Shown here piece after piece: positions 6,386 to 38,950 of a stretch of 64,000 bases of DNA. The first letter of the stretch is position 1. Each line of letters starts with the position of its first letter. A program made the position numbers and the translations under genes. Below the pieces are notes generated by a model. It was not told the origin of the DNA. It did no database searches and saw nothing but the letters and a program-made list of their open reading frames with translations. The stretch is from Cyanophora paradoxa CCMP329 (lineage: Eukaryota > Plantae > Glaucophyta), in contig QPMI01000370.1 of NCBI GenBank assembly GCA_004431415.1, forward strand, positions 925 through 64,924. Direction: 5' to 3'.

Positions 6386-6455
<70 letters not shown>

Positions 6456-8326: not shown

Positions 8327-8359
<33 letters not shown>

Positions 8360-9734
8360 GGGGGGGGGAGGGGGGGGGCGCACGGCGGCGTAGGTACGGC
8401 GGCAGAGGAGGGCCCCGCCGGCGGCGGCGGCGGCGATGAGGAGCAGGCCGGCGGCGGAGGCGCCGAGGCGGCGGCGGAGCCGGGCTCGCCGGCGAGGGGG
8501 ATCAGGCAGGAGAGGAGCGCGGCGGCGGCGACGGCGGCGAAGAGGCCGCAGCGCAGCTCGTTCATCGCCGCCCGCAGGTACGGCTGCATCGTCTGCGCCC
8601 GCCCCGGCTCGCGCCGTGCGGCGAGGCGGGGCGGGCGGGGCGGGGCGGACGGTGTGGAGGGCGAGCATGGCGAGGGCGACGAGGAGGACGGCGAGGCGGA
8701 GCGGCACGCCGCGCCCGTCCACCGCGAGCCGCAGCGCCGCCAGCGCCGTCTGCAGCAGCGCGTAGACGAAGGGAGGCGCCCGTGGCCGCCGCGCCCCAGT
8801 CCCGCGAGCCCGGTCGCACTCGAAGAAGAGCAGCGCCCCCGCGAGCGCCAGCGCCGCCGCCACGGGCGCCCCCGCCGCCCCAGCAGCCCGAACACCAGCG
8901 GCGAGGGGTACCCGCACGCCGCCCCGGAGGGCGCGCCCCTGCGGGGCCTCAGGGGAGGGGGGGAAGGGGAGGCGGTAGGGCAAGCGTGCCCGGAAGAGGC
9001 AGGCGAGGGCGTCGAGGAAGAGGCAGAGGACGGGAGGTAGACCCCGCCGAGAGGGCCGGCAGCAGCACCCTCAGCGCCTGCGGGCGGCGCGCCGGTTCAG
9101 CCTGCCGGCCGGGCCGGCGGGGCGGGGACGACGGGGCGGGGCGGGGCGGGCCTTGACGGGAAGAGGCGGGGCCGGTGGGCGGTGGCGAGGTACGCGACGG
9201 CGGCGGCGGCGGCGGCGGTGACGCCCGTCGCCGCCAGCGCGAGGTAGAAGGCGGGGGCGCGCCCGCGCCGCCCCCGCCCCGCGCCGCCCCCGCCACGTGG
9301 GCGCTCCCGTCCAGCCACCCCACCGCCGCTCGTCCCTGCGCGCGGGCGCGCTCGGCGGAGCGAAGCAAAGAGCCTACAGCCGGCAGCCGGCCGCGGGGCG
9401 CACCAGCCGGGGAGGACCAGACCGAGCAGCTGCCGCGCGGGGCACCGGTCCGGTCAGGGCGCGCGGCGGCGGCAGCAGCGGGGCGGCCGGGCGGGCGGGC
9501 GGATGCCTGGATCGCGTCGAAGACGACGCAGGCGATGGGGAAGAGCACGCGGGCGACGCTGCCGCGCCGCCAGTCCGGCGCCGGTCGGTCCAGCGCCCCT
9601 GCGCTCCCGCAGGGCCGGGTCGACGTCCGGCGTGCGCGGCGCGCGGCCGCGCGGGGCGGACCCTGCAGAACGGCCGTCACGACGGTGACCACGCGGCCCT
9701 GCCGCTCCTTCTCCTGCTCCTCGTCGCGCGCCAT
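882..9734 (-). CDS. TmcB (tiny macrocysts B)-like multi-pass membrane protein, many introns
   Basis: Spliced peptides match the TmcB-type architecture. N-terminal TM block includes QPYLRAAMNELRCGLF. Helical core reads AAHNEALSALKTLW...AKRKAQEGYERMLRKFPSSK/LVRCYGLYLRDVVNDVESAAYHF. C-terminal TM plus tail reads TLFLFFLYVGMFRGMIARLGD/ESSRASQFLETIP...AAP* (stop 882-884). Internal exon boundaries are only partly resolved. Confidence 0.6.
1498..1532. repeat. Intronic ~36-bp hairpin-containing repeat, copy 1
   Basis: ggtaggaatgaagcgagggatttagatcctcgcgg is identical to 7116-7151 apart from one C. Confidence 0.85.
6371..6455. repeat. ~85-nt poly(G) tract in an intron
   Basis: Direct reading. Similar runs occur at ~8329-8378, ~32753-32790, ~44030-44062 (poly C) and ~62323-62373. 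Confidence 0.9.
7116..7151. repeat. Intronic ~36-bp hairpin-containing repeat, copy 2
   Basis: Contains the perfect inverted repeat GCGAGGGAT-ttag-ATCCCTCGC. Confidence 0.85.
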
Positions 9735-14400: not shown

Positions 14401-17400
14401 AGGGACTGCGGCTGCGCGTCAACTCGAGAGCGCGCGAACGGAGAATTTAAAGTGCAGACTTCGAGTTCGGCTCCTGGCCGAAAAGGTCGCTTGTTGTCGA
14501 CGTGAAGATCGCCGTCAGTTTGATCGGCTGCACCGTCGCAAGCGGGCAGAGCTCGTCTGCCAAGCACTGCGGGGCGAAGCTCGTCACGATCTAGACTAAG
14601 CGACATTGGAGATGCACAAGGCTCGAAGCGCGTGCCGGGAGGCAGGATGTGGAACCCGACGACGGTGCGTAGAAGCCGGTCTCGCAGGGCGTACACACGG
14701 TCTGGTTCGAGCGGTACGTGCCGGCCGGGCACGGCTCGCACACGGTTCGCAGCGGGTCAGCCTGCCGTCACAATCGCCAGATTCAAACAAATGCACTGGC
14801 GGCCGCGGCGATGCGCGCGCACCACGGAGCCCGGCGGGCAGGAGAAGCACGAGATAGAGGCGGTCCCGGGGGCGATCGTGTTAACGTCGCAGGCCTCGCA
14901 TGTTGTCGCACCCGCGCGGAGCAGCGTGCCTGCCGCACACGCCTCGCAGCCCGTGCCCCCCGCGTTGGCGACGTGCCCCATCGGGCAGAGCTCGCACGCC
15001 GCCGATGATGCCAATGGCGCGTAGGTCCGGCCCGTGCAGCGCTCGCACTTGGCTCCCGTGGCGTCCGGCGCCGTGCCACTCGCGCAGGCTGCAAATTGTC
15101 GTGTGAGTGGACGACGGCCTCGCAACGAACGGGGCTCGTGAAACGCGAACGAGTGCAGAGGGTGTTCTCGGCGTTGGAGACGTGGCCGGCCGCACAGGCC
15201 GCGCACGCCGAGGCGCCGAAGCTCTCGGCGTATCTCCCCTGCGCGTTTCGCGCTAAATGATCTCGTCGCGCGCACGCGCAGTGAGAAGTTCGATCCGCAC
15301 CGAAGGGCATCTGGAGCAGGCGGGCATGCTGCCGTTGCGGAAGCTTCCCGGTGCGCACGGCAAGCAGCCGCGCTTGTCTGGCGCGGAAACCTGTTGCCGC
15401 GGATCAGCACTCTGAACTTGCGGTCCAAGAAGATCTAGAAGCGATTTGCACCGTTCCATCCAAGCAACGCTGCGATTTGTGGAAAACAGATGATCATGAG
15501 CCCACGCCGAGTCGAAATCGCGAATGAAAAATTAAAGAAAGAACCGTGCAGGATCCCGCGGTCCCTTTCGCACTCGCGAAAGAGTTCGACTCGCACGCGA
15601 TGCACGCCAGCGTTCCGTTGGGCATGAAAGGTGCCCTCCGCACACCTGCCGAACGTTTTTCGCACGCCAGTTCTGAGCGGTTGCAGTTAAGCACGGGAGG
15701 TTAGACGTACGGGACGCATGACTTGGCGTTCAGAGCCGGCAGGGCTGCCCGACAGGCATCAGCTCATGATCGGTTACTCAAACGGCTTGAATGAACTTGA
15801 ATTTCGCTCACATCCGGCAGGGCAGGCTTCGCAAGAGCCGAAGAGACCGCCCGGGCTGTAGAACCCGGCCGGGCACTGCGAGAAGAGAAGTTACCGAATC
15901 GCAAAAACTGGAAGGGGTCTTTCGCGGCGTGAAAGCAGCACACCAGGATGCAGAAGGAGACGCCGTCAGGCATGTAAGTGCCCGCGGGGCACGGGGCGCA
16001 GCTCTGGCGGCGCTCGTCCTGCGTGGTGCCGGGCGGGCAGCGCGTGCAGTTCTGGAAAGCCCCCGAGCCCGACGAGACCGTGCCGGACGGGCAGTCCTGG
16101 CAGGCCGCGCCTGCCGACGGCTGGTACGTTCTGCGGCGATTGCGAGGCGGTGTCAGCGAGCCGCGATGTGAGGGTGACCGGCTTAACGAACCCGGGGCTG
16201 CAGGGGAGACAAAGGGTGCGGTCCGAGCTCGAGACGTAGCCGTTCGGGCAGTCCTCGCACTTGCCGAACGCGCGGCTAGAGGAGCGCGTCCCGGGAGGAC
16301 ACGCCTGGCACGGCGCGCCGCTCGACGCTTGGAATGTGCCCGGCTCGCATGGGTCGCAAGTGCGCCGGTCCGGCGAAACGACCGTGCCACGCTCGCAGAC
16401 AGTGCAGTTCCCGTACGTGGCCGTCCGCGACGTGACCGAGCCGGCCGGGCAGTCCTGGCACGGCGCCCCGGGCCCCGACTGGTACGTCCCGACGGGGCAC
16501 TCCAGGCACCGCTGCCGGTCCTCGCTCGGCACCGTCCCTGCGCGAGAACGCGTCGCCGTGCAGTCAGCGCGAGGCTCATGATCAGCAGATGATCACAAGC
16601 AGCCAAACTTGCCGTCGGGGCACTTGAGGCACGAGCCGGCGCGCCCCGTCTCCGGCGAGTACGTTCCCGAGGGGCACTGCGCCCCGCCCCGTGAGCCCGC
16701 GATGCGAGAACGAAAACGATCGCCGCCGCCCGCGCGCACCGGCGCGCAGAAGGTGGAGCCCGTCGGCATGTAGGTCCCCACGGGGCACGCCTCGCACCGG
16801 TCCTTCGCCTCCGTCGGCACCGTCCCCGCCGCGCACCGCGTGCAGTTCGTCGCCCGCAGCCCCGACGCGATCGAGCCCAGCGGGCAGTCCTGGCACGGCG
16901 CCCCGCGCGACGGCTGGTACGTCCTGCGCCCCGCGTCGGCTCCCCCGCCGCCCGAAGCGACGCCAACGCTCGCAGCGCACCCCGCGGTGCAGGGGAAGCA
17001 AAGCGTGCGGGCCGCGTTCGCCACCTCCCCGGCTGCGCACTCGTCGCAGCTCCCGAAGGTCCGAACGTTGGGCGCCACCGTCCCCGGCGCGCACGCCTGG
17101 CACGGCGCCCCGGCCGACACCTGGAATGCGCCCGCCGGGCAGTCGTCGCAGTCGTCGCGGTTCACGTTCGGCACCGAGCCTGCCGCGCGCGACCCCCGTC
17201 GGCCCCGTCAGGCGCGAAGAGCATTCGAAGCTTTAAGCCGCCGAGCCTCAGGACGGACCGAGCGGGCAGACGGCGCAGGAGCCGTTCGTCGCCGCGTTCT
17301 TTGCGAACGTGCCCGACGGACACTGCGCGAAAGGAGCCGAGCTTCAGCGCGCGCGCCTCCAGAGGCAGCCCGCTCGCGGTTTCGCGCACCGGGGAGCAGA

Positions 17401-20400
17401 AGGGCGCGTCGTCCGGCTTGTATGTCCCGCTCGGGCAGGCCGTGCAGGCGACGCGGTCCGCCGTCGAGACCCAGCCGCGCTCGCACGCATCGCACGCCCC
17501 AAACGTGCCCGTCTGCGCCGCCTTCGTCCCCAGCGGGCACGCCTCGCACACCGCCCCCTCCGAGGGCTGGTAGCTCCTGCGCGCCGATCCGTCAGTCACG
17601 CGAAAGCGTCGATCGGTTAGGAAGGGAAACGAGCCCGAGGGCGCAGGGCGAGCAGCGCTGGCGGTCCGCTGAGGCGACCTCGCCGCGCTGGCACCGCGTG
17701 CAGTTCCCGTACGTGGCCGTCCGCGACGTGACCGAGCCGGCCGGGCAGTCCTGGCACGGCGCCCCGGGCCCCGACTGGTACGTCCCGACGGGGCACTCCA
17801 GGCACCGCTGCCGGTCCTCGCTCGGCACCGTCCCTGCGCGAGAACGCGTCGCCGTGCAGTCAGCGCGAGGCTCATGATCAGCAGATGATCACAAGCAGCC
17901 AAACTTGCCGTCGGGGCACTTGAGGCACGAGCCGGCGCGCCCCGTCTCCGGCGAGTACGTTCCCGAGGGGCACTGCGCCCCGCCCCGTGAGCCCGCGATG
18001 CGAGAACGAAAACGATCGCCGCCGCCCGCGCGCACCGGCGCGCAGAAGGTGGAGCCCGTCGGCATGTAGGTCCCCACGGGGCACGCCTCGCACCGGTCCT
18101 TCGCCTCCGTCGGCACCGTCCCCGCCGCGCACCGCGTGCAGTTCGTCGCCCGCAGCCCCGACGCGATCGAGCCCAGCGGGCAGTCCTGGCACGGCGCCCC
18201 GCGCGACGGCTGGTACGTCCTGCGCCCCGCGTCGGCTCCCCCGCCGCCCGAAGCGACGCCAACGCTCGCAGCGCACCCCGCGGTGCAGGGGAAGCAAAGC
18301 GTGCGGGCCGCGTTCGCCACCTCCCCGGCTGCGCACTCGTCGCAGCTCCCGAAGGTCCGAACGTTGGGCGCCACCGTCCCCGGCGCGCACGCCTGGCACG
18401 GCGCCCCGGCCGACACCTGGAATGCGCCCGCCGGGCAGTCGTCGCAGTCGTCGCGGTTCACGTTCGGCACCGAGCCTGCCGCGCGCGAACCCCGTCGGCC
18501 CCGTCAGGCGCGAAGAGCATTCGAAGCTTTAAGCCGCCGAGCCTCAGGACGGACCGAGCGGGCAGACGGCGCAGGAGCCGTTCGTCGCCGCGTTCTTTGC
18601 GAACGTGCCCGACGGACACTGCGCGAAAGGAGCCGAGCTTCAGCGCGCGCGCCTCCAGAGGCAGCCCGCTCGCGGTTTCGCGCACCGGGGAGCAGAAGGG
18701 CGCGTCGTCCGGCTTGTATGTCCCGCTCGGGCAGGCCGTGCAGGCGACGCGGTCCGCCGTCGAGACCCAGCCGCGCTCGCACGCATCGCACGCCCCAAAC
18801 GTGCCCGTCTGCGCCGCCTTCGTCCCCAGCGGGCACGCCTCGCACACCGCCCCCTCCGAGGGCTGGTAGCTCCTGCACGCCGAGCCGTCAGTCACGCGAA
18901 AGCGTCGATCGGTTAGGAAGGGAAACGAGCCCGAGGGCGCAGGGCGAGCAGCGCTGGCGGTCCGCTGAGGCGACCTCGCCGCGCTGGCACCGCGTGCAGT
19001 TCCCGTACGTGGCCGTCCGCGACGTGACCGAGCCGGCCGGGCAGTCCTGGCACGGCGCCCCGGGCCCCGACTGGTACGTCCCGACGGGGCACTCCAGGCA
19101 CCGCTGCCGGTCCTCGCTCGGCACCGTCCCTGCGCGAGAACGCGTCGCCGTGCAGTCAGCGCGAGGCTCATGATCAGCAGATGATCACAAGCAGCCAAAC
19201 TTGCCGTCGGGGCACTTGAGGCACGAGCCGGCGCGCCCCGTCTCCGGCGAGTACGTTCCCGAGGGGCACTGCGCCCCGCCCCGTGAGCCCGCGATGCGAG
19301 AACGAAAACGATCGCCGCCGCCCGCGCGCACCGGCGCGCAGAAGGTGGAGCCCGTCGGCATGTAGGTCCCCACGGGGCACGCCTCGCACCGGTCCTTCGC
19401 CTCCGTCGGCACCGTCCCCGCCGCGCACCGCGTGCAGTTCGTCGCCCGCAGCCCCGACGCGATCGAGCCCAGCGGGCAGTCCTGGCACGGCGCCCCGCGC
19501 GACGGCTGGTACGTCCTGCGCCCCGCGTCGGCTCCCCCGCCGCCCGAAGCGACGCCAACGCTCGCAGCGCACCCCGCGGTGCAGGGGAAGCAAAGCGTGC
19601 GGGCCGCGTTCGCCACCTCCCGGCTGCGCACTCGTCGCAGCTCCCGAAGGTCCGAACGTTGGGCGCCACCGTCCCCGGCGCGCACGCCTGGCACGGCGCC
19701 CCGGCCGACACCTGGAATGCGCCCGCCGGGCAGTCGTCGCAGTCGTCGCGGTTCACGTTCGGCACCGAGCCTGCCGCGCGCGACCCCCGTCGGCCCCGTC
19801 AGGCGCGAAGAGCATTCGAAGCTTTAAGCCGCCGAGCCTCAGGACGGACCGAGCGGGCAGACGGCGCAGGAGCCGTTCGTCGCCGCGTTCTTTGCGAACG
19901 TGCCCGACGGACACTGCGCGAAAGGAGCCGAGCTTCAGCGCGCGCGCCTCCAGAGGCAGCCCGCTCGCGGTTTCGCGCACCGGGGAGCAGAAGGGCGCGT
20001 CGTCCGGCTTGTATGTCCCGCTCGGGCAGGCCGTGCAGGCGACGCGGTCCGCCGTCGAGACCCAGCCGCGCTCGCACGCCTCGCACGCCCCAAACGTGCC
20101 CGTCTGCGCCGTCTTCGTCCCCAGCGGGCACGCCTCGCACGCCGCCCCCTCGGACGGCTGGTAGCTCCTGCGCGACAGAAAAAGCGTCATGCATCATGCA
20201 TATAATCAGACATATGGTTAGACATGGAATGTTAATCGAAGCGCACCCAGCCGAGCACGCTACGCACGAACGCCGATCGTCGGACGAAACGGTGCCCCGC
20301 ACGCAGCGCGTGCAGTTGCGGAAGGTGCCTGCCAGTGGAGCGACCGACCCCACGGGGCACGGCTCGCAGGAAGCGTCCTCCCTTGGCTGGTATGTGCTTC

Positions 20401-23400: not shown

Positions 23401-26400
23401 GGATATCGATGATTATATCATGTATAAAATATTGCGGCTGAGCATGATTCTATGCACCAGTTGTCGCGCTCGGAGGGGGCGGTGTCCGCGGAGGCCACGA
23501 CTGCGCTGGCGAGCGAGCGGGGCTTCGACCTCGAATTCTGCGGCAGCTCCAGCAGCGCGCGGCTGCGCCGAGCGGCCGTAGAGTCGTCTCCGCAAGGAAA
23601 GAACTCGCGTTTCATAGAGCCCGTGTTCGATGCAGAGCAGGTGATATCGCTATATATGATTTGAGGGCTGCCGGAGACCGTATATCCTTCCGGAGGCCGA
23701 GGAAATGACGTGCTCTGCTCCATATAAACGCACATGGTCCGCTGAAGAGCGTCTCCGGATCCCGCATTGTCCCGTAGGGGCAGTTTTGCGCACGTCGCAG
23801 AGGTGATTTTGCACGGCTTGTTAAGATCGTCGAACCAGTTGGAGCTGTCCGCCGTACATCCACCCGTCGAACACTTGCCAGGCGCGCTACAAACACCCCC
23901 TGAGAGAGAACAATCGACCGCCTTCATGCACTGGTAGGCATACTGGTAGCTCGGTGAAGTTAAAACCGTGCACGCAGTTTTGCAGCAGCAGAATGCGGAG
24001 CAGCCGCCGCACTGGGATGCGGCAATTCGGGTCCCACCTCGCTCTGCACACTTCGCCCAGCTGCTGCAAATCTTGTGGGTGATGGGGATGTAGGTGTTGG
24101 TGGCGGTGGTGAAGCTGCAGCAGATGGAGTCGCAGGATCCCGATGAAGAAGAGGCGAGCGGTGTCGGAGCCGGCGTCGACACCAAGCTCCCAGTGCACGA
24201 GCTGCAGTAAAAGCTGTAGCTCGGATATGAAGAGTCGGTGATGATATAATCTGCTGGGCAGGTATTTGTGTAACAAGACGGCGTCGAGCCGGAAGCGGAA
24301 CTCCTGCAGCACACCATGCCGGATCCGCCTCCAGACGGAGGGGCATAGCCAGACAAGCCACAAGTCGACGAAGTGCAAATAGATGATTCGGAGTATGGCC
24401 GCACAACGTACGTTGAGCTCCCCGTGTTCATCGCGCTGCACTCCGGAACAGTCTTGCACTCGTAGCCCGAGTATGTGTATGTGGTTATCACTTCAGTGCC
24501 GGACTGGATAGAGCCGGACTGGGTGGCCCGGGCGCAACAGGCCCGCGGCCCGCCGTTCTCAGAAAGGCTGCAGTCCTTGTCGAAGCTCGTGGACGGGTCC
24601 TGATACGCGGGACCGTAACCGCAGACGTCATCCCCGCCGCAGAAGATCGAGTGCGCCTCCGTGCCAGCGACAGCCGCGCAGCGCGATTTGAACACGCACT
24701 TGTAGTAGGTCCCGTCGAGGTCGCCCCAGGGGCCGAGGCAGCACACGCTCGGGGACGTGGGGTGCAAGGGGCCCGTGCAGCCGGCGCATTCGGCAATGTC
24801 GCCTACCATGTTGAGCGGGGAGGTCGGGCACTTGGCTTTCGCCATGCAGATGGGAGGCGAGTAGGGGCTGTACTTGCAGCAGACGTGGGTGGAAGCTTCG
24901 ACGGCCGCAGCCTCCATCGAAGCCAGGTCCAGCGCGCCACGGTACCCGGCGAGCGTCGTCGCCGTTGTGGAAGGGGCCAGACCTCCGCAGGCACCGAAGC
25001 CGAACGCCGTACCGATGCAACCAGCTGTCCACACGAGTCAGGCGATTTCGCCGCCGCGAATCGAAATCAAAGCCCCTCGACGCGCACCGTAGGAGTAGAA
25101 CCCGGTGGAGTTGGTGAAGTAGTCAGAGGCGCTCGAGTTGGCGGGTGGCACGGCACTCTCGTTCGCGCGCAGCGGCAGCGCGGCCGCCGTGCGCTCCGCA
25201 ACGATGTCGGCATAGCGGAGGGCGGCGTAGTCCAGGTCAGAGCGACCCGTGTACAGCATGCGGACGGTGGCCGCGTCCGACGCCGCGAGGAGAGACTGCA
25301 GCGTCGGGGAATTCGCGGGGTCGAGGCCGCGCAGACGGGCGGCGAGCTCGAGCACGGCGATGGAGGGCAGGTCGGAGGGGGAGGCGGGCTTGGGGCAGCC
25401 GGCGGGCGAGTGGAGGCACGCGGGCTTGGGCATGGACGAGTGGAAGACGGCCATCCCGCGGGCGGGGAAGGCGAAGTACTGCGCGTCGATCGTGTCCACG
25501 TAGCCGCCTGCAAGCGGCGCACCGGTACTGCATAAGATCCATAGAATGATGTTGAAATATATATAATCAATGCTCGCCCGGAGGGATCTGCTTGCTCTCG
25601 TACTCGGTCACGTAGTCCTCCTCGATCGAGCAGCCGATCGCGTCCAGCTTCATGTGGTAGAGCACCTACGAAGAAATTTCTAGATCAGAAAAGCACAGAA
25701 AGCGGAATAGTTGTTATACGAGGAACGTAGTATAACGTACTTCGGACAGCGTGAATAATGTATATTGTTACATAAATTTCGCACTCTTTGTTGCTTCGCA
25801 ACAAGTACTTCTTGGGTACTTGTTGCACCTGCAACAAGTCCTACGAGCTTCCTAAGAGCTGCAGCAGTGAGCTATCGCTGCAGCTGCTGCAGCTTCTCTT
25901 CAGAGTTGCTTGATAGCAGCTTCGCTTCTTGCTCCCATGGCAGCCCTAGCGCGCCCCCGCGGGCGCCTCCAGCTCTCCCGTTTCGTCCTAATTGTGTGTA
26001 TCCTTGCGCTCCTCGTTTGCCCGGTCGCAAATGGCGCCCGGGGTGCGAAGAGAGCCAAAACCGCGACTCCCTCTCCCAATCCGCCCGATCCGACTGTGGC
26101 GCCCTCTGCTGGCCCCAGTAGCCCACCCCCTGTTCCTCCAACGCCCACCCCTGAGGCGCCGGCCCCGGAGCCCGGCCCGCCAGTTATCACTCCTTCAGGC
26201 TCGAATATTTGCATCGGAACGCATGGCCCAACAGTGCCAACCCCATCCCAGCAGATTGCAGACCAAACCGTAGAGGCGTTCAATCAGCGTTTCGCAGCCA
26301 TTGAACATTACCTCGGCGAAGTGATTGCAGCTCGTACCATAGGTACTGCCACCGCCAATCCAGCCCCGATTCCAACTCCGCCCATTTCGTCGGTCCCACT

Positions 26401-29400
26401 TGTCGATTTGACATCGAACAATGGCGGTGAAGGATCATCTTCGGGCAACACTGCGCGTGAGCGTGCTGCACGTACACGTGAGCCCCTTACTGAGCGCGAA
26501 CGCCAACGTCTCCACTATAATATTACCCGTTGGAATAACCCTCTAAACAAAGAATTTGCTTTGGACACTCTCGATAATATAGCGTTAGCCGAGGCCCGTG
26601 ATTATTCTGCTCTTTATATCGCACTTAGAGACCAACTCAAAAAGATCCAACGCATCAATCAGCTAGGCCTTGATCGTGCTCTTAGACTGCAAAATGTAAA
26701 CCAGGCTACTGATGATTTTCAGGAGCGCCAACTTTTGTTAACTGAACAAATGTATCAGCAGCAGTTGCAGCAGTTTACGCAGAATACTGTCACAGGCATG
26801 CCGTATGGTCGCTCACAGAATTTCGCTGCTCGCCCTCCCGGCCCTCGTCTGGCGGCCTCTGGCCCTACTCGCCCACGGGCTTGCTATCATTGTCATGATC
26901 CATCCCATATGCGTAATGTCTGTCCTGCTTTCCGTGCAGCTTGCCAGAACTGCCCTCCTGGCACTCGCCCGACTCCTCTGCCGACTCCAAACTCGTAAAT
27001 TTATTTCTTTTCACATCGATCCATCAGAATATCGATATTCATGAGTTTTTCGCTACTTATGTACGAGCAGTGTTTTGACGCATGAGAGCATATCTTGATA
27101 GCAGAACCTGTGAACGTACTTGTGTTTTCTTGTGAGTAATTGATGATGGATTCGAAAGTCGCTGCAATTTCTTGATGCCCCAAAATCGCCACTGGCGTGC
27201 ATATGCATGGATGCAATTCGCGAAATCGCCTTTTTATGGCGTACATATTCATACATGTCGCAGCTCTGCCCTTTGTGGCATCTGCATGTCTTGTTTTTTG
27301 CTTTGAAAATCGCCTATGGCGTGCACTTACATCGACATTTATTGATTGCAAATTGTCAGGACAGCTCTGCCCTCGCGTGGCATCTGTTGCTGTATTTCTT
27401 TTCAGTGCACGGCACTAGTGCATACTCCCTCGCCGGAGATGGAGATTCGGTCGCCATTTTTCTTTCCCTTGTGCAGTTCAAGCATCTGGAGTTCAGGCAC
27501 GCCTCCCCCCATAAATCGCTCCTTGCACTGACTGGCGACCGAACGCATCGATGGCATTATACATACGCATTTTACATATATGTGTGCTTCTGTGTGCCGT
27601 TAGAGGCCTTGCACTCGTCTGCAGGCTCTCGGCCTTCGCTCTTTTGCTCTTCATGGCAATTGTACAAGTAGTACCTCAATTGCAATATACGAAATGAGCG
27701 CTGTCCGAATAGTTGTTATACGAGGAACGTAGTATAACGTACTTCGGACAGCGTGAATAATGTATATTGTTACATAAATTTCGCACTCTTTGTTGCTTCG
27801 CAACAAGTACTTCTTGGGTACTTGTTGCACCTGCAACAAGTCCTACGAGCTTCCTAAGAGCTGCAGCAGTGAGCTATCGCTGCAGCTGCTGCAGCTTCTC
27901 TTCAGAGTTGCTTGATAGCAGCTTCGCTTCTTGCTCCCACCCAACCCTCCCTAAATATATGGATGCTGTTCTGCTGTCTATATAATTCCCTCCCTTGCGT
28001 GCGGCCTCGAGCCTGCATTCTCGTGCACTATTAATTGAGTGCTGTTGTTTTTTCTGTCAGGTTTTACTGCTCGCTGTCTCGGAAGTGCGGATGCCTTGGC
28101 GGCATGGCGTGCAATCGGAACAAGTGATTACATCCTTTCATGGCTTCAGAACGGCTACCCTCTTGCTGGCGTCGAGCATATGCCTCCTAGTGTACATTAC
28201 AATGCTGGTCAATCTCAGCGCCCTCGTGAGAGTACTTTCATTCGGGCAGAAATTCAGAAGCTGCTCGGTACCGGCGCTATTCGGGTGGCCCCCAAGCCCC
28301 GAAAATTGTTTGCTCGCTATTTACGGTTCCAAAGAAGACTGGTGATAAGCTCAGACTGATTTGGGATGGCCGCCCAACAAATCGAGGTCTTCCTCCTGTC
28401 CCTTTTCGCTATGAAAATATGCGCGAGGTCATCGCCTTGCTGCGACCTGGCTGGTTTATGTTTACTATCGACCTCGAGTCGGGATATCATCATGTACCGG
28501 TAGACCCGCAATATTTCTCGTACCTGGGCTTCCAGTACGATAGTACTTTCTTCGAATACACCGTTTTACCCTTCGGGCTCTCACATGCCCCATATGCATT
28601 CACCAAGATCATACGTCAGGTCATTAAATTTCTCCGCGCACACGGTATTACCGTGGTATCGTATGTAGATGATTTCTGGTTTGCGGCTCCCACGTACCAG
28701 GCCGCTGTTAATCTTCGCAATTTCATTCTCGATCTTTTTCGCCACCTGCACTTATTCATTAATGAGAAATCGGCCCTTGAGCCTGCACAGCGTGTCGAAT
28801 TTTTAGGGTTTATTGTAGATTCCACATCTATGATGTTTGAGGTCCCTCTGCAGAAGCTTAGTAAGCTTCAGGACCGGCTAAAGGACGCAGCTAAGCGCAT
28901 CCAGTCGTGCCAGGCTAGAGGCGTGCAATTTCAGATGTCAGCTCGTACACTCGCTTCGATTGTCGGTGTGCTTATGTCAATGGCCTTAGCTATTGCACCC
29001 GCTCGCATTCATACTCGATCCATTTATCGCAACATTGATATTACCCAGCGACAATTTCGGTGGAATGCCCCGGCGGTGGTATCGCCGGAGGCCCAGGAGG
29101 AGCTTCTGTGGTGGCATGCAAATCTCGCCCGCTATAATGGGCGGTGTGCCATCCGGCCAGAGCGAATTTTCGTTGTTACGACGGATGCCAGCAAGATCGG
29201 TCTTGGTGGTTTTGTCACCACCGAGGTTGGCGATCTCTCATTCCAACAACAGTGGACTCCTGCAGAGTCGGCCCAGACGCCTGCATGGCGTGAGATGACC
29301 GCCATTATTCGTGCTCTGCATCATTTCAGTCCTTACCTGCAGCACGTTAATTTACTAGTTCGCTCAGATAACACAAATGCAGTGCAGTACATTCTTAATG

Positions 29401-32400
29401 GTGGCGGTCGTAGCCCCGAGCTTACATTAATCGCCAAGGAAATTTGGAATTTCGCCTTGCAAAATTGTGCCTTCATGGATGCTGAGTGGATACCTGGAGA
29501 AACCAATAATTTCGCCGATTATCTTAGTCGCTGGTTTGCCCCTGCTGACTATCAGCTTTCCGATGCTGTTTTCCGTCGCATTGTTAACAGATATGGCTTG
29601 CCTGATGTCGATCGAATGGCATTAGCTTCCTCTGCACGTGTCCCTCGCTATAATAGCATTGATCCTTTTGACCGCCTTGCAGAGGCAGTAGACTGCTTCA
29701 CTGTTGATTGGTCTCGTGATTTTAATTATGTTTTCCCCGACCCTGCAGTCCTACTGCGGGTGGTTCGTCATGCTCAAGCTTGTCGAGCTCGGATGATTGT
29801 TGTAGTACCCGAATGGCCCTCACAGCCATGGTGGCCTATCTTGCAGGCTGCAGCTGTGGAGCCCCCTCTGCATCTTGGTCGGGGTCACACAGTATGCCTT
29901 TTCGGTCCAACTCGTGCTGCTCTTCCTGAGTGGCTGCTCCTCGCTTTTCTAGTTCAGTTTTAGCTGCACCCAATTGCAAACTAGTGTCAAATAATTATAA
30001 ATGCAATCGAGCGCACACCCTCATGCTTCTAACCATACCCTGCAGTGGATGCAGCTCGTTGGGCCCACATCTGTGCTCGCATTACGTTCTACGCAAACCA
30101 GCATCTTGCCTCATCCACGCGAGATGCATATGCAATGTGGGTTGGCCGTTTTCGGCAGTTCTGCATTCAGCTGGGTGTTCTACCTTTTCCCGTCGATGCT
30201 GAGGTTCTAGCCGGTTTTTTGTGCGATATTGCTGACGATGACTACGTCTTCTCAACTATAAATGTAGCTTTTTCTGCAGTTCGTAATGAGTGTGAGACCT
30301 TGCGCTTTGATACCTCAGTTTTCAGCTCAGTGCTTATTCAGCACGTCCTCACGGGCTTGCGCCGAGTCCTAGGCGATGGCCCCACTCGCCCAGCGGCCGT
30401 CCTTTCGGTCGAACATATTCGCCGGCTAGCGGTAGCTTCCGATCGTGTTCCATCACAGACCCATCGTCGCTCTATTGCTATGATCACCGTCGGTTTCTTT
30501 GGCCTCCTCCGTCGCTCTGAGATTGTGCAAATTCGGCGGTCTCATTTATCTTTCCGCCCAGATGGCATGGTCCTCCGCGTCCCTCGCTCTAAAACAGATC
30601 AGACTCGGATTGGTCACGAGCTTTTTATTTCGGCTCTGCACTTCATGGCAATTGTACAAGTAGTACCTCAATTGCAATATACGAAATGAGCGCTGTCCGA
30701 AGCGGAGCGAGGAGCTCGAGGGGCCGACCTTGCGCTGGTACGTCTCCCAGCTGTTGAAGTTGGCGCCGCGGGGCGGCGGGTCGAGCGGCGAGACGGAGAA
30801 GATCGTCGACGAGTCGATGTAGCGGAGTAGATCTGGCCGTCAATGAGAGTCTTGAAGCGTTATGAGAGCTCACTGAATCGATAAATTAAAATAAATTAAA
30901 TTAAAGCCCGCACCAGAGTGGAGAACAAGGGGGTACCACCCGTAGCGGCTCTGCCGATAAAGAGTTATTTCTCGAACTGCCTGCCATCAAAATCGAATTG
31001 AGCTCACCTTCGTCGGGTTGGAAAAGAAGTGCATGAAGTACATGTTCCCGAAAAGCGCAGCGGCGCCGACATTGCGGACCTTCGTGCTTTGAGAGCCGGT
31101 GGACGGAGATCGCGAGGGGAGCGGGAGCGGGTCACCTGCCCGGTGAAGGCGCGGGCCTGCTGGACGATGCGCTGCGCCTGCTGCCGGGCCGCCTCGGGCT
31201 CGTAGCCGAAGCGGCCGTCGGCGCCCCGGACGAGGCCGTGCACGGCGGGGTCCAGCAGCAGGTCGGCGAAGCCCATCGCCATGCCCATCGTCTCCGTCCG
31301 CAGCGCCTCCGTCGAGTTGTCCAGCCGCGCCGCGATGGACGCCAGGCCCGCCTGGCCCCGCTCGCGCAGCGCGACGGAGACGCCGCGGCCGGCCCTGACG
31401 CGCTCGAAATTGTCCGCGATGTGGCTCGGGAGGCCCGTCGTGAGGTTCTTCTGGCGCAGGCCCTCGACGCCCGTGACGAGGCGGACCTGCTCCGTCACGT
31501 TCGCGAGGAGGTCCGCGTGCCCCGCGAGCTGCACCGTCTCCTCCGGGCCCACCGGCCCGGGGTACGCGATCCGGCTGGTGAAGCCTGCGGCGCGTCGGAC
31601 GTAGCGGCGCGCGCGACCGCGGGCGGCGGGCCGCGGGCGCACCGATGCCGGAGATGATGCGCACGTCGGGCGGCGCGGGCAGCCCGAGCTCCTCCATCCT
31701 GCGAGCGGCACTCGACGAAAGCACTGCGGCCGGCCGAGGGAGGGCGCGCCGAAGCCGCGCACCAGTGGAAGCTGACGGGGCGGAGGGTGTCCAGGTCGAT
31801 CTCGCTGCGAGGAAAATTAAAGGAGATCAGCTGCCAGAGACCGGCTGCCGCAGTGCAGAAGGGAGCCTCGGAGAAGGCAGCGGGACGGAGGGAGGAGGCA
31901 GGGAGGCTTGATGGAGGGTGGAAGGGGGGGTTGGGGGGGGGGAGGCTGGCGTCGACGCGGGTACGGGGCGTGTACGAGCCAGAGATCAAGGGGGGAATGG
32001 GGGGTACCGTGAGGGAATGCAAGGGAATGGGGGTGCGGGACTGGAGGGGTCGGGGAGGGTGTGGGGGTACAGGACGGGAGGAGTGTATCGGTGGGGACGA
32101 GAGATCAAGGATTAGAGGGGTGGAAGAGAGATACTGGGCGGAGGGGAGGGCGGGGGGTGGGGGTGGGGGGGGGGGGAATGGGGAGGAGGGAGATGGAAGC
32201 ATGGGCATGCGGGAAGGATCCGGAGGGTGCAGGGAGCTGGGAACGGGGGACGGAGCGAGAAGGTGGGTATATGACATGATGGGGGTGCAGAACATGAATG
32301 GGGTACGGGCCAGGAGGGGATGTAGGGGAATAAAAGTGCGGGATCGGAGAGGTCGGGGTGGGGGTGGGGGGTGGGGGAGTCGGGGCTGGGGGGTGGGGGT

Positions 32401-33418
32401 GGGGACGGGACAGAGAACCGGAGGCTAGGGCATGGGCGGAGGACAAGAGATAGAGGGAAGTGGGGGAAGCGATGAAAAGATGAAAAGAGCCTCGGAGAGG
32501 TGGGGGGAAGAGAGAGAGAGGGCGGGAGAGGGGGGGAGAGGGGAGGGGGTGGCCTGGGGGAGGGGGGAGGCGGGGGCGGGGTGGGGTGGGGGAGGGGAGG
32601 GGGGGGGTCGCCCAACCGGGAGAGATAGGAAGGGAGGGGTATAAATGGATGGGCGGGATGTGGAAGGGCATGGGGAAGGGGGAATACGGGACTCGAAGAA
32701 CGGGAGTGGGCAAGAGGCGGGGAGCGGAAACAAGGGAAGCGCGGCTGCGCAAGGGGGGGGGGGGGGGGGGGGAGGGTGGGGGGGGGGCTGGGGGAGGGGT
32801 TGAGGGGAGGGGTGGAGGGGGGTGGGGAGGGGGCGGGCGGGGATGCAGGGACGGGAAGGCTCTTGCAGGCGAAGGGACGAGGGAGGATGTTGCGGAGGAG
32901 GGGGAGACCAGGGGAGCGGGGGGGCCGCACCTGATGAAGAACTTGCCGGTGGCCTCGCGGCCGATGAACATGCCCCGCAGGCCGCTCATGCCCGACACCT
33001 GCGCCCCAAACGTCGTGATCAGCAGCAGGACCCAGCTCATGATCAGAAGCGTAAGGCGCTGCGGGGGCGGGCCTGGTCGTAATCCTGCATGAGAGCGCCC
33101 ATGATGAGCTCCGTCGCCGGCGCCGTCTGCAGCGTGAACGTCTTGCGGGCAGCCGACGGGGAGGCCGTTCGCCTTTGATCGTCTAGGCCTTCGCCTGCCG
33201 CGGCTGTCGCGGACAGCGGCGTTCAGCAAATACGGCGCGGCGGCGGGCTCATGATCAAAGACAATAAATTCACCTGTGCAGGAAAGCGACGCGGCAATGA
33301 TGAGACAAGCCACGAGCACCGCTTCCGCGACCGCGCATGCGAGTTGCGGAGCTCGAAAGGAGGGAGCCCTTCCAGATCTTCGATTTCGGGGGCGGTGCAG
33401 GCCTAGGTGGGCTTCCAT
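11466..33418 (-). CDS. Giant secreted/membrane-anchored Cys-rich repeat protein (ephrin-receptor-like/GCC2-GCC3-type CxxCPxGTY repeats)
   Basis: Signal-peptide-like start at 33418 (AVAEAVLVACLIIAASLSCT). Exons splice in frame across the retroelement-bearing intron (...SWETYQRK/VLYHMKLDAIG...). A CC-module exon spans 23458-25024, and dozens of C..CP.GT[YF] repeats span ~14700-21950. Hydrophobic segments lie near 14100-14160, 13700-13850 and 12600-12680, then a low-complexity tail ends ...MESEERS* at 11466. The single-gene model is inferred. Confidence 0.7.
16402..20172. repeat. Intragenic tandem array, ~2.9 copies of a 1296-bp unit (6 exons + 6 introns per unit)
   Basis: Units start at 16402, 17698 and 18994. 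They are near-identical including introns, and the ORF track repeats at a 1296 offset. Confidence 0.95.
25705..25937 (+). repeat. Split direct repeat A1 (233 bp)
   Basis: Identical by eye to 27707-27939. Confidence 0.95.
25937..26998 (+). CDS. gag: Gag-like protein with C-terminal zinc knuckle
   Basis: Intronless ORF with a Pro-rich N-part, coiled-coil-like middle and CYHCHDPSHMRNVC (CX2CX4HX4C). Confidence 0.85.
   Translation: MAALARPRGRLQLSRFVLIVCILALLVCPVANGARGAKRAKTATPSPNPPDPTVAPSAGPSSPPPVPPTPTPEAPAPEPGPPVITPSGSNICIGTHGPTVPTPSQQIADQTVEAFNQRFAAIEHYLGEVIAARTIGTATANPAPIPTPPISSVPLVDLTSNNGGEGSSSGNTARERAARTREPLTERERQRLHYNITRWNNPLNKEFALDTLDNIALAEARDYSALYIALRDQLKKIQRINQLGLDRALRLQNVNQATDDFQERQLLLTEQMYQQQLQQFTQNTVTGMPYGRSQNFAARPPGPRLAASGPTRPRACYHCHDPSHMRNVCPAFRAACQNCPPGTRPTPLPTPNS
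27649..27939 (+). repeat. Internal fused B1|A2 repeat (circle-junction copy)
   Basis: The element's 3' end is joined to its 5' end through one GAA (27707-27709): ...gcgctgtcc-GAA-tagttgttatac... Confidence 0.95.
28061..29963 (+). CDS. pol: DIRS-type Pol: reverse transcriptase, RNase H and Dam-like methyltransferase domain
   Basis: N-terminal WRAIGTSDYILSWLQNGY. RT motifs LFTVPKKTGDKLRLIWDGR, IDLESGYHH, LPFGLSHAP and YVDDF. RNase H motifs TTDAS, REMTA, RSDN and NNFADYLSR. MT-like DVDRMA...AVDCFTVDW...NYVFPD...VVPEWPSQPWWP. One frame break occurs at the C-run near 28290. Confidence 0.92.
30045..30689 (+). CDS. Tyrosine recombinase, C-terminally truncated
   Basis: N-terminal LASSTRDAY, box I GFFGLLRRSE and RSKTDQ are present. 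The ORF runs into repeat B before the HxxR, GxW and catalytic Tyr motifs. Confidence 0.85.
   Translation: MDAARWAHICARITFYANQHLASSTRDAYAMWVGRFRQFCIQLGVLPFPVDAEVLAGFLCDIADDDYVFSTINVAFSAVRNECETLRFDTSVFSSVLIQHVLTGLRRVLGDGPTRPAAVLSVEHIRRLAVASDRVPSQTHRRSIAMITVGFFGLLRRSEIVQIRRSHLSFRPDGMVLRVPRSKTDQTRIGHELFISALHFMAIVQVVPQLQYTK
30641..30701 (+). repeat. Split direct repeat B2 (61 bp)
   Basis: Identical to 27649-27709. Confidence 0.95.
31805..32930 (-). other. 1.1-kb polypyrimidine (sense) / polypurine G-run-rich intron
   Basis: AG|gtgcgg donor at 32930 and cgcag acceptor at 31805 join KFFIS/EIDLDTL in frame. The + strand is overwhelmingly G/A. Confidence 0.7.
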
Positions 33419-36046: not shown

Positions 36047-38950
36047 ATGGCGGCCGCGCGGGTCCTGCTGCTCCCGGCGCCCTCGCTCGACCCTGAGGAG
36101 TGGGGCGCGGTCGTGTTCTGCGATGTCGCGGGCCCGGTTCCTGGTGCGCGCCCCACCCCGGCGCCAGCGCTCGCGACCTCGAGCCGCGCCGACGCGCGTG
36201 CAGGGAACAAGGAGCCCGCCGGCCAGGCCTTCCACAACCTCGCGTATACAGTCATACACGGCCTGGAGGACGCGGAGGAGCAGGCGAAGCATGAAGCGGA
36301 GGAGGACGAGACGTTCCGGAAGAAGCACAAGTCCGACAACTGGCTGCCCATCGAGGGCGAGCACCACGATTTGAACAACCAGGCGAGGCTTGGCGCGGCG
36401 CCGCACGCCGCCCCGCGCGCCGACCGCTCGCCGCTCAGGATCACTACGCGGTCATGGGGCTGGAGCACCTTCGGCACGAGGCGACGGAGGATCAGATCCG
36501 CAAGACGTACCGCGAGCTGAGCCTCAAGTACCACCCGGGTTAGCGCTTTCGCGCGCGGCGGGGGCGCTGGGCGCGGCTGACGGGGGCGGGGCGGGGCAGA
36601 CAAGATGCAGGGGAAGGAGGGCGTCGAGGGCTCGGACCTCATCTTCAAGGCCATCCAGAAGGCGTACGACGTGCTCGGCGACCCCGTGAAGCGCCGCTCG
36701 TACGACTCGAGCTTCGAGTTCGACGACGCTATCCCCACCGGATTCGAGAAGGCGCGCCCCGCCGGGGCGCCGCGCCCGGGGCCGGGCGCCGCCGCGCGCG
36801 CGCGGGGCGGCGAGCGGGGCGCAGGGGAGCTTCTACGAGGTCTTCGGGCGGGTCTTCAAGCGGAACGCGGTCTGGTCGGCGGTCAAGCCGGTGCCCATGC
36901 TCGGCGACGACGACACGCCCGACGCCGACGTCGACGGCGCGCCCGCCCGCCCCTGCCGCCCGCGGCCCGCCGCCGCTCACGCGCCTCGCAGCGTTCTACC
37001 ACTTCTGGGACAACTTCAAGTCGTGGAGGTGGGTGCCCTGCCCCTGCCCCGCGGGGGCCGACGCGGGCCCGGGCCGGCTCGAGCGGGGCGGGGCGGGGGC
37101 GCAGAGACTTCTCGTACCTGGACGAGCACGTGCCGGAGAGCGCCGAGTGCCGGGAGGAGCGGCGCTGGATGGAGAAGGAGAACGAGCGCGAGCGCAACAA
37201 GCGCAAGAAGGCCGAGTTCGCCCGCGTCCGCAAGTGCGCGACTCGCGCCGCGCCGCCCCGCGCCGCGCGGGGCCCCGGCCGAGGCGGGTGGGCGTGGCAG
37301 GCTGGTGGACCTGGCGTACAGCAAGGACCCGCGCGTGGTGCGGCGGCGCAAGGCCGAGCTGGAGGCGAAGGAGAAGGCGAAGCAGGACAAGGCGGAGAGC
37401 CGGCGGCGGGAGCAGGAGGCGAAGGAGAAGGCGGAGGAGGAGGAGCGGCAGCGCAAGGCGCGGGAGGAGGAAGAAGAGCGGCAGCGGAAGCAGCGGGAGA
37501 AGACGGAGAAGGAGTGGCAGAAGAAGCAGCTCAAGAAGGAGCGCGCCCGCCTCCGCACCCTCCTCCAGGCCCTCCTCCCCGTGCGGCCTTCGCCCCACCC
37601 GCCGCCGGCCGCGGGCCGAGCGGGGCGCGCGGCAGGCGGCGGAGGCGCCCGGGGAGGCGGACGTCGAGACGTACGCGAACGAGGCCGGCTACGAGCGCAT
37701 CAAGGCCCTCAACGACTCCATCGAGGGCACCGACGGTCCGCCCCGCCCCGCCGCCCCCGCTCCCACGCCCTTCCCGGTCCGACCACCGGCGGCGGCAGCG
37801 GCGCGGGCGCGGGCGGGCTGGGAGGCGGAGTGGGGCCCCGTGCGGGACGCGATTCGGGGGCGGGAGGAGGCGGCGGCGCGGGCGGCGGAGGAGGAGGCGG
37901 CCAAGAAGAAGGCGGCCAAGACGAAGAAGAAGGCGGGCAAGGAGGGCCCCGAGGCGGCTGCCGGGGGCGACGGCCCGAGCGGCGCGGCCGCCGAGCGCCC
38001 GTGGACCGAGCAGGAGCTCTTCGCCCTGCAGAAGGCCCTCGTCAAGTTCCCTCCGGGGGCGGCGAACCGCTGGGAGAGCGTCGCCGTCGCCATGGGCCAC
38101 ACGCGCGAGCCGCAGGAGATCATCGCCATGGCCAGCAAGATACGGTGCCCCCGCCCGCCCGCGGCGCGCGCCCCCGCCGGGCCGCCGGGCGCTGACGGCT
38201 GCGCTTGCGTGCGGCGCAGGACGGCGAAGATGGGGAAGCCGCCGCCGGACGTCAAGGCGCGCCGGGCCGGACGGGGGCGGGGCGGCGGGCGGTGCGGCTG
38301 ACGCGCGGGGGCGCGGCGCAGGTGGAGGACGACTACAGCAAGTTCGCCCACTCCAAGGGCGTCCGCCAGGAGATCAAGTCCGCCCCACGCAGCGCTGGGA
38401 GGCGCGCCCCGGCCCCGCCCGCCCCGCCCCGCCCCCGCCCCGCCCCTCGAGCCCCGCGCCAGGTCGACGAGAAGACGACCCCGCCGGTCGCCGTTGCCGC
38501 GGAGAGCCCTGCGCCGCCGCCGGCCGCAGCGCCGGCGCCGCCGCCGGCGGCGGCGGCCACGGCGTCGCCGCCGCCGCGGGCGGAGGCCGGGGAGGCGGAC
38601 GCGGAGCGCAAGGCGAAGAAGGCGGCGGCGGTGCCGCCGGGGGCGGAGGACGGGGCGGGCCCCGCGAACAAGGACTGGACGGTCGAGCAGCAGCAGGCCC
38701 TCGAGCGCGGCCTCAAGGCGCACCCCGCGACCCTCGGCGCCGAGCGCTGGAAGCTCATCTCCAAGCTCGTCCCGGGGAAGACCCCCAAGCAGTGCATGGA
38801 GCGCTTCAAGGCACGCCCCGCCGCCCCGCCCCGCGCCCCGCCCCTTGCCCCGCCCCGCGCCGCCCCGCGGCTGACGGGGCGGCGCGCGCGCAGGAGCTGG
38901 TGGCCTTCTTCAAGACCAAGCGCGACAAGGAAGCCAAGGGCGAGGCCTGA
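36047..38950 (+). CDS. DNAJC2: DnaJ homolog subfamily C member 2 (zuotin/MPP11) with SANT domains
   Basis: EPAG motif, J-domain DHYAVMGL...KYHPDK, FYHFWDNFKSWRDFS, ERRWMEKEN, DPR, and two SANT repeats (PWTEQELFALQKAL, DWTVEQQQALERGL). About 13 introns. Confidence 0.95.

Follow-up and report, generated by a model that had tools for sequence, protein, structure and literature searches.

The genome of the glaucophyte alga Cyanophora paradoxa CCMP329 contains a tyrosine recombinase retrotransposon in which the internal copy of the joined terminal repeats lies between gag and pol. The element was found in a stretch of 64,000 nucleotides (contig QPMI01000370.1 of assembly GCA_004431415.1, positions 925 to 64,924 of the forward strand), here called the window, and all positions are given in its coordinates. 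The stretch it occupies is very probably one young, non-autonomous copy of a multi-copy family of PAT-like elements, which have split direct repeats and a methyltransferase-like (MT-like) domain, and it represents a single composite element. In all likelihood the full-length members of the family are about 5.8-5.9 kb long, and their normal layout is A1-gag-spacer-B1/A2-pol-YR-B2. In this notation A and B are the left and right terminal repeats, the slash marks the point where B1 and A2 meet, pol encodes reverse transcriptase (RT), ribonuclease H (RNase H) and the MT-like domain, and YR is the tyrosine recombinase. The position of the junction between gag and pol appears to be a new variant among PAT-like split-repeat elements.

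The repeats and their order can be read directly from the window. A repeat search of 24500-32000 found two A repeats of 233 nt (25705-25937 and 27707-27939) that are 100% identical, and two B repeats of 65 nt (27645-27709 and 30637-30701) with one mismatch. The internal copies of the two repeats share GAA at 27707-27709. Probes made from A and B had no further match within the 64-kb window, where 0 chance matches were expected. Inverted pairs in the region of the element are short and imperfect only, and the termini are direct repeats. The resulting order is A1-gag-spacer-B1/A2-pol(RT/RNase H/MT-like)-YR-B2, which agrees with the order and repeats proposed in the initial annotation of this DNA. 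The three GAA strings that had been claimed are also present; their 9-nt contexts are gcgGAAtag (left end), tccGAAtag (where B1 meets A2), and tccGAAgcg (right end). The repeat sizes proposed there (A 233 bp, B 61 bp) needed one correction. The repeats themselves stand, and contigs representing the whole genome move the limit of A to TAG (25708/27710), giving 230 nt, and place B, which reads CTTCATGG...TCCGAA, at 30641-30701 with 61 nt. A1 is highly structured, and the ATG of gag straddles its 3' edge. The window copy as a whole is 4,997 bp long and has a G+C content of about 50%, while the rest of the window has 60-83%.

Contigs from independent sequencing runs show that this layout is not peculiar to the assembly. 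Contigs of three DNA runs from the same organism (X1, X5, and X12, dated 2012, 2019, and 2024) were placed on 25300-31100, and the contig graph is identical in the three runs: A leads to gag or to pol, and B leads to A or to flanking sequence. A is represented in X1, X5, and X12 by a single contig of 230 nt (TAG...CTCCCA). The gag contig (25908-27678) starts at the end of A and extends across gag and the spacer into B; the pol contig (27910-30635/9) likewise starts at the end of A and covers pol and the recombinase. B is a contig of 61 nt ending in TCCGAA, and a further contig (27680-27736) spans the B/A junction. No contig in the three runs joins gag to pol or A to B, which excludes the ordinary order A1-gag-pol-YR-B1A2B2 for the window family.

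The depths of these contigs suggest that the two modules, gag and pol, occur together throughout the genome. In X1 the depth is 57 and 47 in the flanks, 378 in the gag module, 386 at the B/A junction, 439 in the pol module, 705 in A, and 871 in B. The depths of A and B are thus approximately the sum of those of the two modules, and the junction is about as deep as the gag and pol modules, showing that the modules are linked. The ratio of gag to pol depth is 0.86, 0.77, and 0.86 in the three runs. Taken together, the values suggest a family of about 5-10 copies, each with two A and two B repeats. They also suggest that practically every gag module is followed by B/A, and that at most one or so of the pol modules lacks an upstream B.

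The same branching is found in a related family from a different source. A search with pol found relatives with about 70-73% DNA identity over pol and YR. Two contigs from a single unrelated public sample, L001 (carrying pol) and L004 (carrying gag), begin with the same 30 nt, which equal the 3' end of A, and then diverge. After the end of A, L004 continues into the ATG of gag, and L001 enters the leader known from the window downstream of A2. Another relative, L002, starts within A and continues into pol. The branching of L001 and L004 shows that the layout is a property of the lineage and not of a single locus.

The window copy itself is a defective deletion derivative that lacks the catalytic half of the recombinase. 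Its recombinase open reading frame (ORF; 30045-30689, with an invariant TGCAG directly upstream) is 84% identical to that of the relative L003 up to the residues '...GHELFISA' and then enters B2, whereas the recombinases of the relatives continue past this point with the HxxR and Tyr regions. Matches of the window recombinase to Pfam integrase models are weak and cover model positions 3-67 of 172, while L002 and L003 have the full domain (positions 3-167 of 172). Compared with L003, the window copy is missing 798 nt, comprising the C-terminal half of the recombinase with HxxR and Tyr as well as the 3' untranslated region, and there is 1-nt microhomology at the deletion. In X1, X5, and X12 two sets of loose contig ends are found at 30639. 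In the first the recombinase frame continues (...LPGNVLCPVFR), and in the second B is reached from ...CAGGAAACCTT, the same context as in L003. The presence of both sets shows that intact copies exist in the same genome and that the window copy has undergone an internal deletion. The initial annotation overlooked this loss; its identification of a tyrosine recombinase retroelement holds, but what it labelled YR is only the N-terminal half of the recombinase. Because A1 and A2 are 100% identical and the copy has only 7 substitutions relative to the X1 majority contigs, it is young.

The pol protein contains the expected retroelement domains, and its C terminus was assigned through a homologue. 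Pfam matches to RVT_1 (E = 1e-17) and RT_RNaseH (E = 1e-8) are both above the curated cut-offs, and neither rve nor a protease was matched by the element proteins in Pfam. The pol protein has no significant match of its own to the Pfam Dam model. However, its C-terminal 100 or so residues (408-505) align colinearly with residues 468-565 of protein P0014, a segment that scores 37 bits for PF05869 (Dam; cut-off 28.1), and for this reason the region is called MT-like. In the window pol is split over two frames with a break near 28296, and it has no conserved ATG. The majority contigs have one extra C behind 28296 and another behind 27991, and the former closes the break in the frame. The missing C in pol is either a genuine 1-base loss or a homopolymer or assembly error in a run of C.

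More distant relatives have the junction elsewhere. L006 and L007, which are long metagenomic contigs, are the nearest pol relatives outside the family, with 35-37% pol identity. They have split direct repeats in the order A1-gag-pol-YR-B1/A2-(358-436 nt)-B2. In the regions concerned (L007 10504-11265, L006 10981-11726), the 358-436 nt between A2 and B2 are unique sequence. Even 'ordinary' split-repeat elements therefore have a small second A...B module. Other metagenome contigs found with pol are 25-38% identical and short, so that the layout is not visible, and L008, L009, and L010 end too near pol for repeats to show. A scan of the metagenome contigs with a degenerate 26-nt A motif gave no match. 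A midpoint-rooted FastTree tree, built without reference families (no PAT, Kangaroo, or TOC3 sequences), groups the window family with P0004 in a clade with support of 100. This clade is sister to the L006/L007 clade (support 92), and the window family lies apart from the Dictyostelium DIRS-1 and fish DIRS1-like proteins.

Two other explanations of the layout were considered. One is a bipartite or segmented retroelement, suggested in the initial annotation, in which A-gag-B and A-pol-YR-B circularise and integrate separately and often land in tandem. The same A and B bound each half, gag begins exactly at the edge of A1, and pol coding begins about 120 nt past A2. In addition, the pol depth in X1 exceeds the junction depth by about one single-copy unit (439 vs 386), and one A-pol-YR-B without an upstream B may exist. 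However, homologous recombination between A1 and A2 explains a lone pol module equally well, as it does for solo long terminal repeats. The X1 junction depth is approximately that of the gag module (386 vs 378), the gag:pol ratio stays between 0.77 and 0.86 in the three runs, and none of the listed loose ends passes from a complete gag module through B directly into host DNA. By depth, which is a rough measure, the modules are not separate in the genome, and a bipartite element is very improbable. A rearranged or misassembled copy of an ordinary A1-gag-pol-YR-B1A2B2 element is scarcely credible, since the A-to-gag, A-to-pol, and B/A edges are reproduced by independent short-read contigs in three runs and the same branching occurs in L001 and L004, even though the window copy does have one rearrangement (a deletion of 0.8 kb) and the ordinary order is found in L006 and L007, the nearest of the distant relatives. 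The initial annotation had named an ordinary order in other copies, or a misassembly, as the outcome that would overturn its proposal; instead the three runs give the same graph, and the single-element architecture with B/A between gag and pol recurs in them and in the related family.

A single composite element can be accommodated in the accepted model for split-repeat elements. The internal B1/A2 would be a stored copy of the joined ends (TCCGAA/TAG). Following that model, the RNA-derived cDNA would have its incomplete ends restored from this template, and the recombinase would then insert the product without target duplication, in this case into a host intron where GAA is common to the target site and the junction. 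The window copy could presumably move only with enzymes supplied by intact copies. The split-repeat model and the near-identity of the repeats at insertion have been described (PMC6681497). Some points weigh against this picture. Linear single-stranded cDNA intermediates have been reported for DIRS-1 (PMC7192593), and both templating by B1/A2 and circle formation are presumed here. Contig depth gives only a rough idea of copy number, and G+C content is far higher in the flanks than in the element. Finally, the contig graph alone cannot separate A-gag-BA-pol-YR-B from the permuted A-pol-YR-BA-gag-B; the gag-first order is fixed by the window copy and not by the graph. The features of this copy and of the adjoining host gene are listed in Table 1.

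Table 1. Features of the retrotransposon copy and the neighboring host exons, in window coordinates
Feature	Positions	Strand	Evidence or remarks
GAA	25705-25707	+	Common to left flank and B end; target-side trinucleotide or first 3 nt of A (ambiguous)
A1, left terminal repeat, 230 nt	25708-25937	+	100% identical to 27710-27939
gag-like ORF, 353 aa	25937-26998	+	ORF list; homologue P0078
Non-coding spacer after gag	26999-27648	+	About 650 nt; without coding signal
B1, internal copy of right terminal repeat	27649-27709	+	Repeat search; 61-nt B contig
Hairpin across B1/A2 junction	27683-27769	+	11-bp perfect arms CGCTGTCCGAA / TTCGGACAGCG, nested 7-bp hairpin
A2, internal copy of left terminal repeat	27710-27939	+	Repeat search; junction contig 27680-27736
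pol leader	27940-28060	+	Alignment of 4 relatives
pol	28061-29963	+	RT 28332-28817; RNase H 29154-29531; MT-like 29541-29834
Tyrosine recombinase, N-terminal half	30045-30638	+	SAM-like domain, first catalytic Arg, Lys hairpin
Deletion junction, about 0.8 kb lost	30638-30640	+	Contig loose ends at 30639 in X1, X5, X12
B2, right terminal repeat, end TCCGAA	30641-30701	+	Repeat search and contigs
Host gene exons	30790-30832, 30914-30950, 31008-31081	-	RNA-like contig of run X18, CT..AC joint (minus-strand GT..AG)

The termini of other copies suggest that the element prefers certain target sites but does not require them. In the published DIRS model a species-specific trinucleotide at the circle junction is common to the target, and it therefore flanks the insertion on both sides (PMC7192593). 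Loose ends at the left flanks of other copies read ...ATACCGAA/TAG, ...GCGGCAA/TAG, and ...GCCCAT/TAG, with the slash here marking the start of A. All of the right-hand junctions observed have TCCGAA followed by unrelated flanking sequence. Since the genome-wide A contig starts with TAG and not GAA, and all right ends are TCCGAA, GAA belongs to B. A target of GAA or AA looks like a preference (GAA in two of four, AA in three of four) and not a requirement. The GAA on both sides of the window copy could represent either a 3-bp duplication or homology shared at the crossover, and the CAA or CAT to the left of other copies argues against a fixed target-site duplication; no empty site was found. 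The earlier idea of insertion into a GAA target therefore fits the window copy and the DIRS model, but not the left flanks with CAA and CAT.

The element sits in an intron of a host gene, below 30790, and is antisense to that gene. Exon-like sequence resumes near 25667. The RNA-like contig of run X18 that defines the three host exons links them, across 10 unplaced letters, to an antisense segment from the recombinase region of the element (29996-30261). The insertion may provide a cryptic exon or a premature 3' end for the host gene.

The gag module encodes a protein with a zinc knuckle and is followed by a long spacer. The gag-like protein has a hydrophobic N terminus, a Pro-rich region, a helical region, and a CX2CX4HX4C (CCHC) zinc knuckle at 26882-26923. 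It has no Pfam match, and a homologue search gave a single match, P0078, which is 45% identical and shares the hydrophobic N terminus and the knuckle. The hydrophobic stretch at the N terminus (25937-26040; L004 34-130) resembles a signal peptide (...FVLIVCILALLVCPVANG) and is conserved in the relative with 45% identity. Such a start is an unusual feature for a Gag. In the spacer, the final 40 nt or so (27610-27648) are a conserved block, and L004 ends in a block identical to the 30 nt preceding B1. The spacer also contains a 30-nt direct repeat that is 80% identical (27182-27211 and 27306-27335). In both X1 and X5 one contig follows the spacer to 27441 and then turns into unrelated GC-rich sequence (ATGTGTGCCAGATGGGG...), and this is probably a copy truncated in the spacer or a rearrangement.

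The B1/A2 junction is predicted to be strongly structured. The hairpin across the junction has a predicted DNA folding energy of -21.9 kcal/mol (z = -5.5), and 0 of 200 shuffled sequences folded as well. The segment containing B1 and A2 (27596-28040) is predicted to fold as a separate domain (z = -8.1), closed by a stem in which 27610-27634, within the conserved block at the end of the spacer, pairs with 28003-28027 in the pol leader. Among the non-coding blocks of the element, the two arms of this stem are the most strongly conserved. The block of the 3' arm, TGCGTGCGGCCTCGAGCCTGC, is invariant in 4 relatives, and in L004 and L001 the closing stem is a perfect 20-mer.

The arrangement of coding and non-coding sequence raises the question of how pol and the recombinase are expressed. 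About 1.06 kb of non-coding sequence separates the stop codon of gag from pol, and this rules out a gag-pol fusion by simple frameshifting or read-through. At the start of pol there is a pyrimidine tract and an invariant CAG (28058-28060), and an invariant CAG after pyrimidines is also found at the start of YR (30043-30045). In 4 relatives conserved coding begins directly after each of these acceptor-like sites. The two sites share a codon phase, and a conserved ATG is lacking in both ORFs. From these sequence features, expression may rely on an internal terminator and promoter at B1/A2, on splicing that starts from a shared leader, or on a shunt across the stem. It is a tentative possibility that B1/A2 is an expression switch giving separate mRNAs for gag, pol, and YR, by a terminator and promoter or by alternative splicing. 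If true, such a switch would be a retrovirus-like subgenomic RNA strategy in a tyrosine recombinase retrotransposon.

Two forms of separate expression can be compared with these features. In one, A would provide a promoter and leader and B a terminator, and B1/A2 would end the gag mRNA and start a pol-YR mRNA. This form is consistent with the gag ATG at the edge of A1, with the long non-coding gap before pol, with the same A end before gag and before pol in the related family, and with the independent folding of B1/A2 within a stem of the two most conserved non-coding blocks. However, no sense-strand element RNA was found in X18, the only RNA-like run examined, and pol and YR lack a conserved ATG after A2. 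Two transcription units are thus doubtful, as is the accompanying idea that a read-through RNA would be the template for replication; both would be compatible with a single composite element at the DNA level. In the other form, a common 5' exon would be joined to the acceptor-like sites of pol and YR, and the pol intron would take out the body of gag and the B1/A2 junction. The invariant CAG with upstream pyrimidines, the coding conservation that starts exactly there, the shared codon phase, and the lack of a conserved ATG in either ORF would all fit, and several phase-matched GT sites in gag are common to the window and L004. A comparison of gag between the window and L004 for a conserved splice donor gave six shared phase-1 GT columns, none of them convincing; no donor stands out, and most of the columns are explained by conserved residues. 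The conserved CAG could also be coding or regulatory sequence, and splicing of this kind is unlikely.

In the host DNA around the element, a Pfam scan of the ORFs identified a zuotin-like gene and a Cys-rich repeat gene only. The first is represented by a large exon (36605-38947) encoding a zuotin-like protein with DnaJ and zuotin homology domains and a long Lys/Glu-rich repeat. A Cys-rich coding region with ephrin-receptor-like repeats on the minus strand contains three tandem units (16028-20395), each of 1296 nt and with 96-100% identity to one another. Near-pure G runs of up to about 90 nt, together with (GGGGC)n arrays, are found at 6369-6476, 8328-8380, 32743-32790, and 62322-62380. These are possible assembly hazards or G-quadruplex tracts.

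The replication and expression of tyrosine recombinase retrotransposons are poorly understood, and the position of the internal junction is among the few characters used to classify them. A junction that divides gag from all of the enzymes is a third position, beside those 3' of YR and between MT and YR. Together with the short non-coding second module of L006 and L007, it suggests that the junction can move freely along the element. A young multi-copy family with intact and deleted members in a culturable alga offers a workable test system. End regeneration, the choice of target (GAA/AA), and the translation of pol and YR without start codons could be tested there.

The window family has the general features of the DIRS order and the specific features of PAT-like elements. 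It has RT with a retrotransposon-type RNase H, and a tyrosine recombinase (the full domain being present in relatives) without a DDE integrase or protease. Its split direct repeats are seen in both the window and the genome-wide contigs, and an MT-like domain follows RNase H, as judged from the P0014 alignment. The family is therefore PAT-like by structure. DIRS-1 of Dictyostelium and the DIRS1-like elements resemble it in having gag, RT/RNase H/MT, and YR, an internal copy of the joined termini, and, in DIRS-1, a junction trinucleotide thought to be common to the target (PMC7192593). However, inverted terminal repeats with an internal complementary region are not found in the window family, whose repeats are direct, and the two are separate in the quick tree. 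Ngaro and VIPER resemble the window family in their split direct repeats and tyrosine recombinase, and their ends are proposed to be rebuilt in the same way from an internal B1A2. They differ in having B1-A2-B2 adjacent at the 3' end past YR and in having no MT-like domain (PMC4157794, PMC9210276, PMC6681497), an arrangement that the window family does not show.

The position of the internal repeats varies more than is usually drawn. They are 3' of YR in Ngaro and VIPER and in the usual drawing of PAT-like elements (PMC6681497, PMC7192593, PMC9210276). The premise that B-A always lies downstream of the ORFs is nevertheless overstated. In nematode Pat1 and in Kangaroo the internal repeats are placed between MT and YR (PMC4157794), and it has also been stated that 'other configurations exist' (PMC8969392). 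A B1/A2 junction between gag and pol was not described in the accessible literature, Repbase and Dfam being outside this comparison, and the same literature had nothing of substance on DIRS elements in Cyanophora.

The closest structural parallels are Pat1 of the nematodes Panagrellus and C. briggsae and Kangaroo of Volvox. Like the window family, these elements have split direct repeats in the order A1...B1A2...B2. They likewise encode gag, RT/RNase H, an MT-like domain, and a tyrosine recombinase, and the gag of Pat1 has a zinc knuckle. Their internal B1A2 is also inside the coding part and not at the 3' end (PMC4157794). Kangaroo differs in its inverted YR and in having no knuckle. In both Pat1 and Kangaroo the internal repeats are between MT and YR, whereas in the window family they are between gag and pol, and the second module holds all of the enzymes. 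The second A...B module of L006 and L007 is, by contrast, short and non-coding. Overall, the window family, L006 and L007, Pat1, and Kangaroo all fit the scheme A-X-B/A-Y-B and differ only in the content of Y. In the window family Y consists of pol together with YR, in nematode Pat1 and Kangaroo it is YR (PMC4157794), and in L006 and L007 it is a short non-coding stretch.

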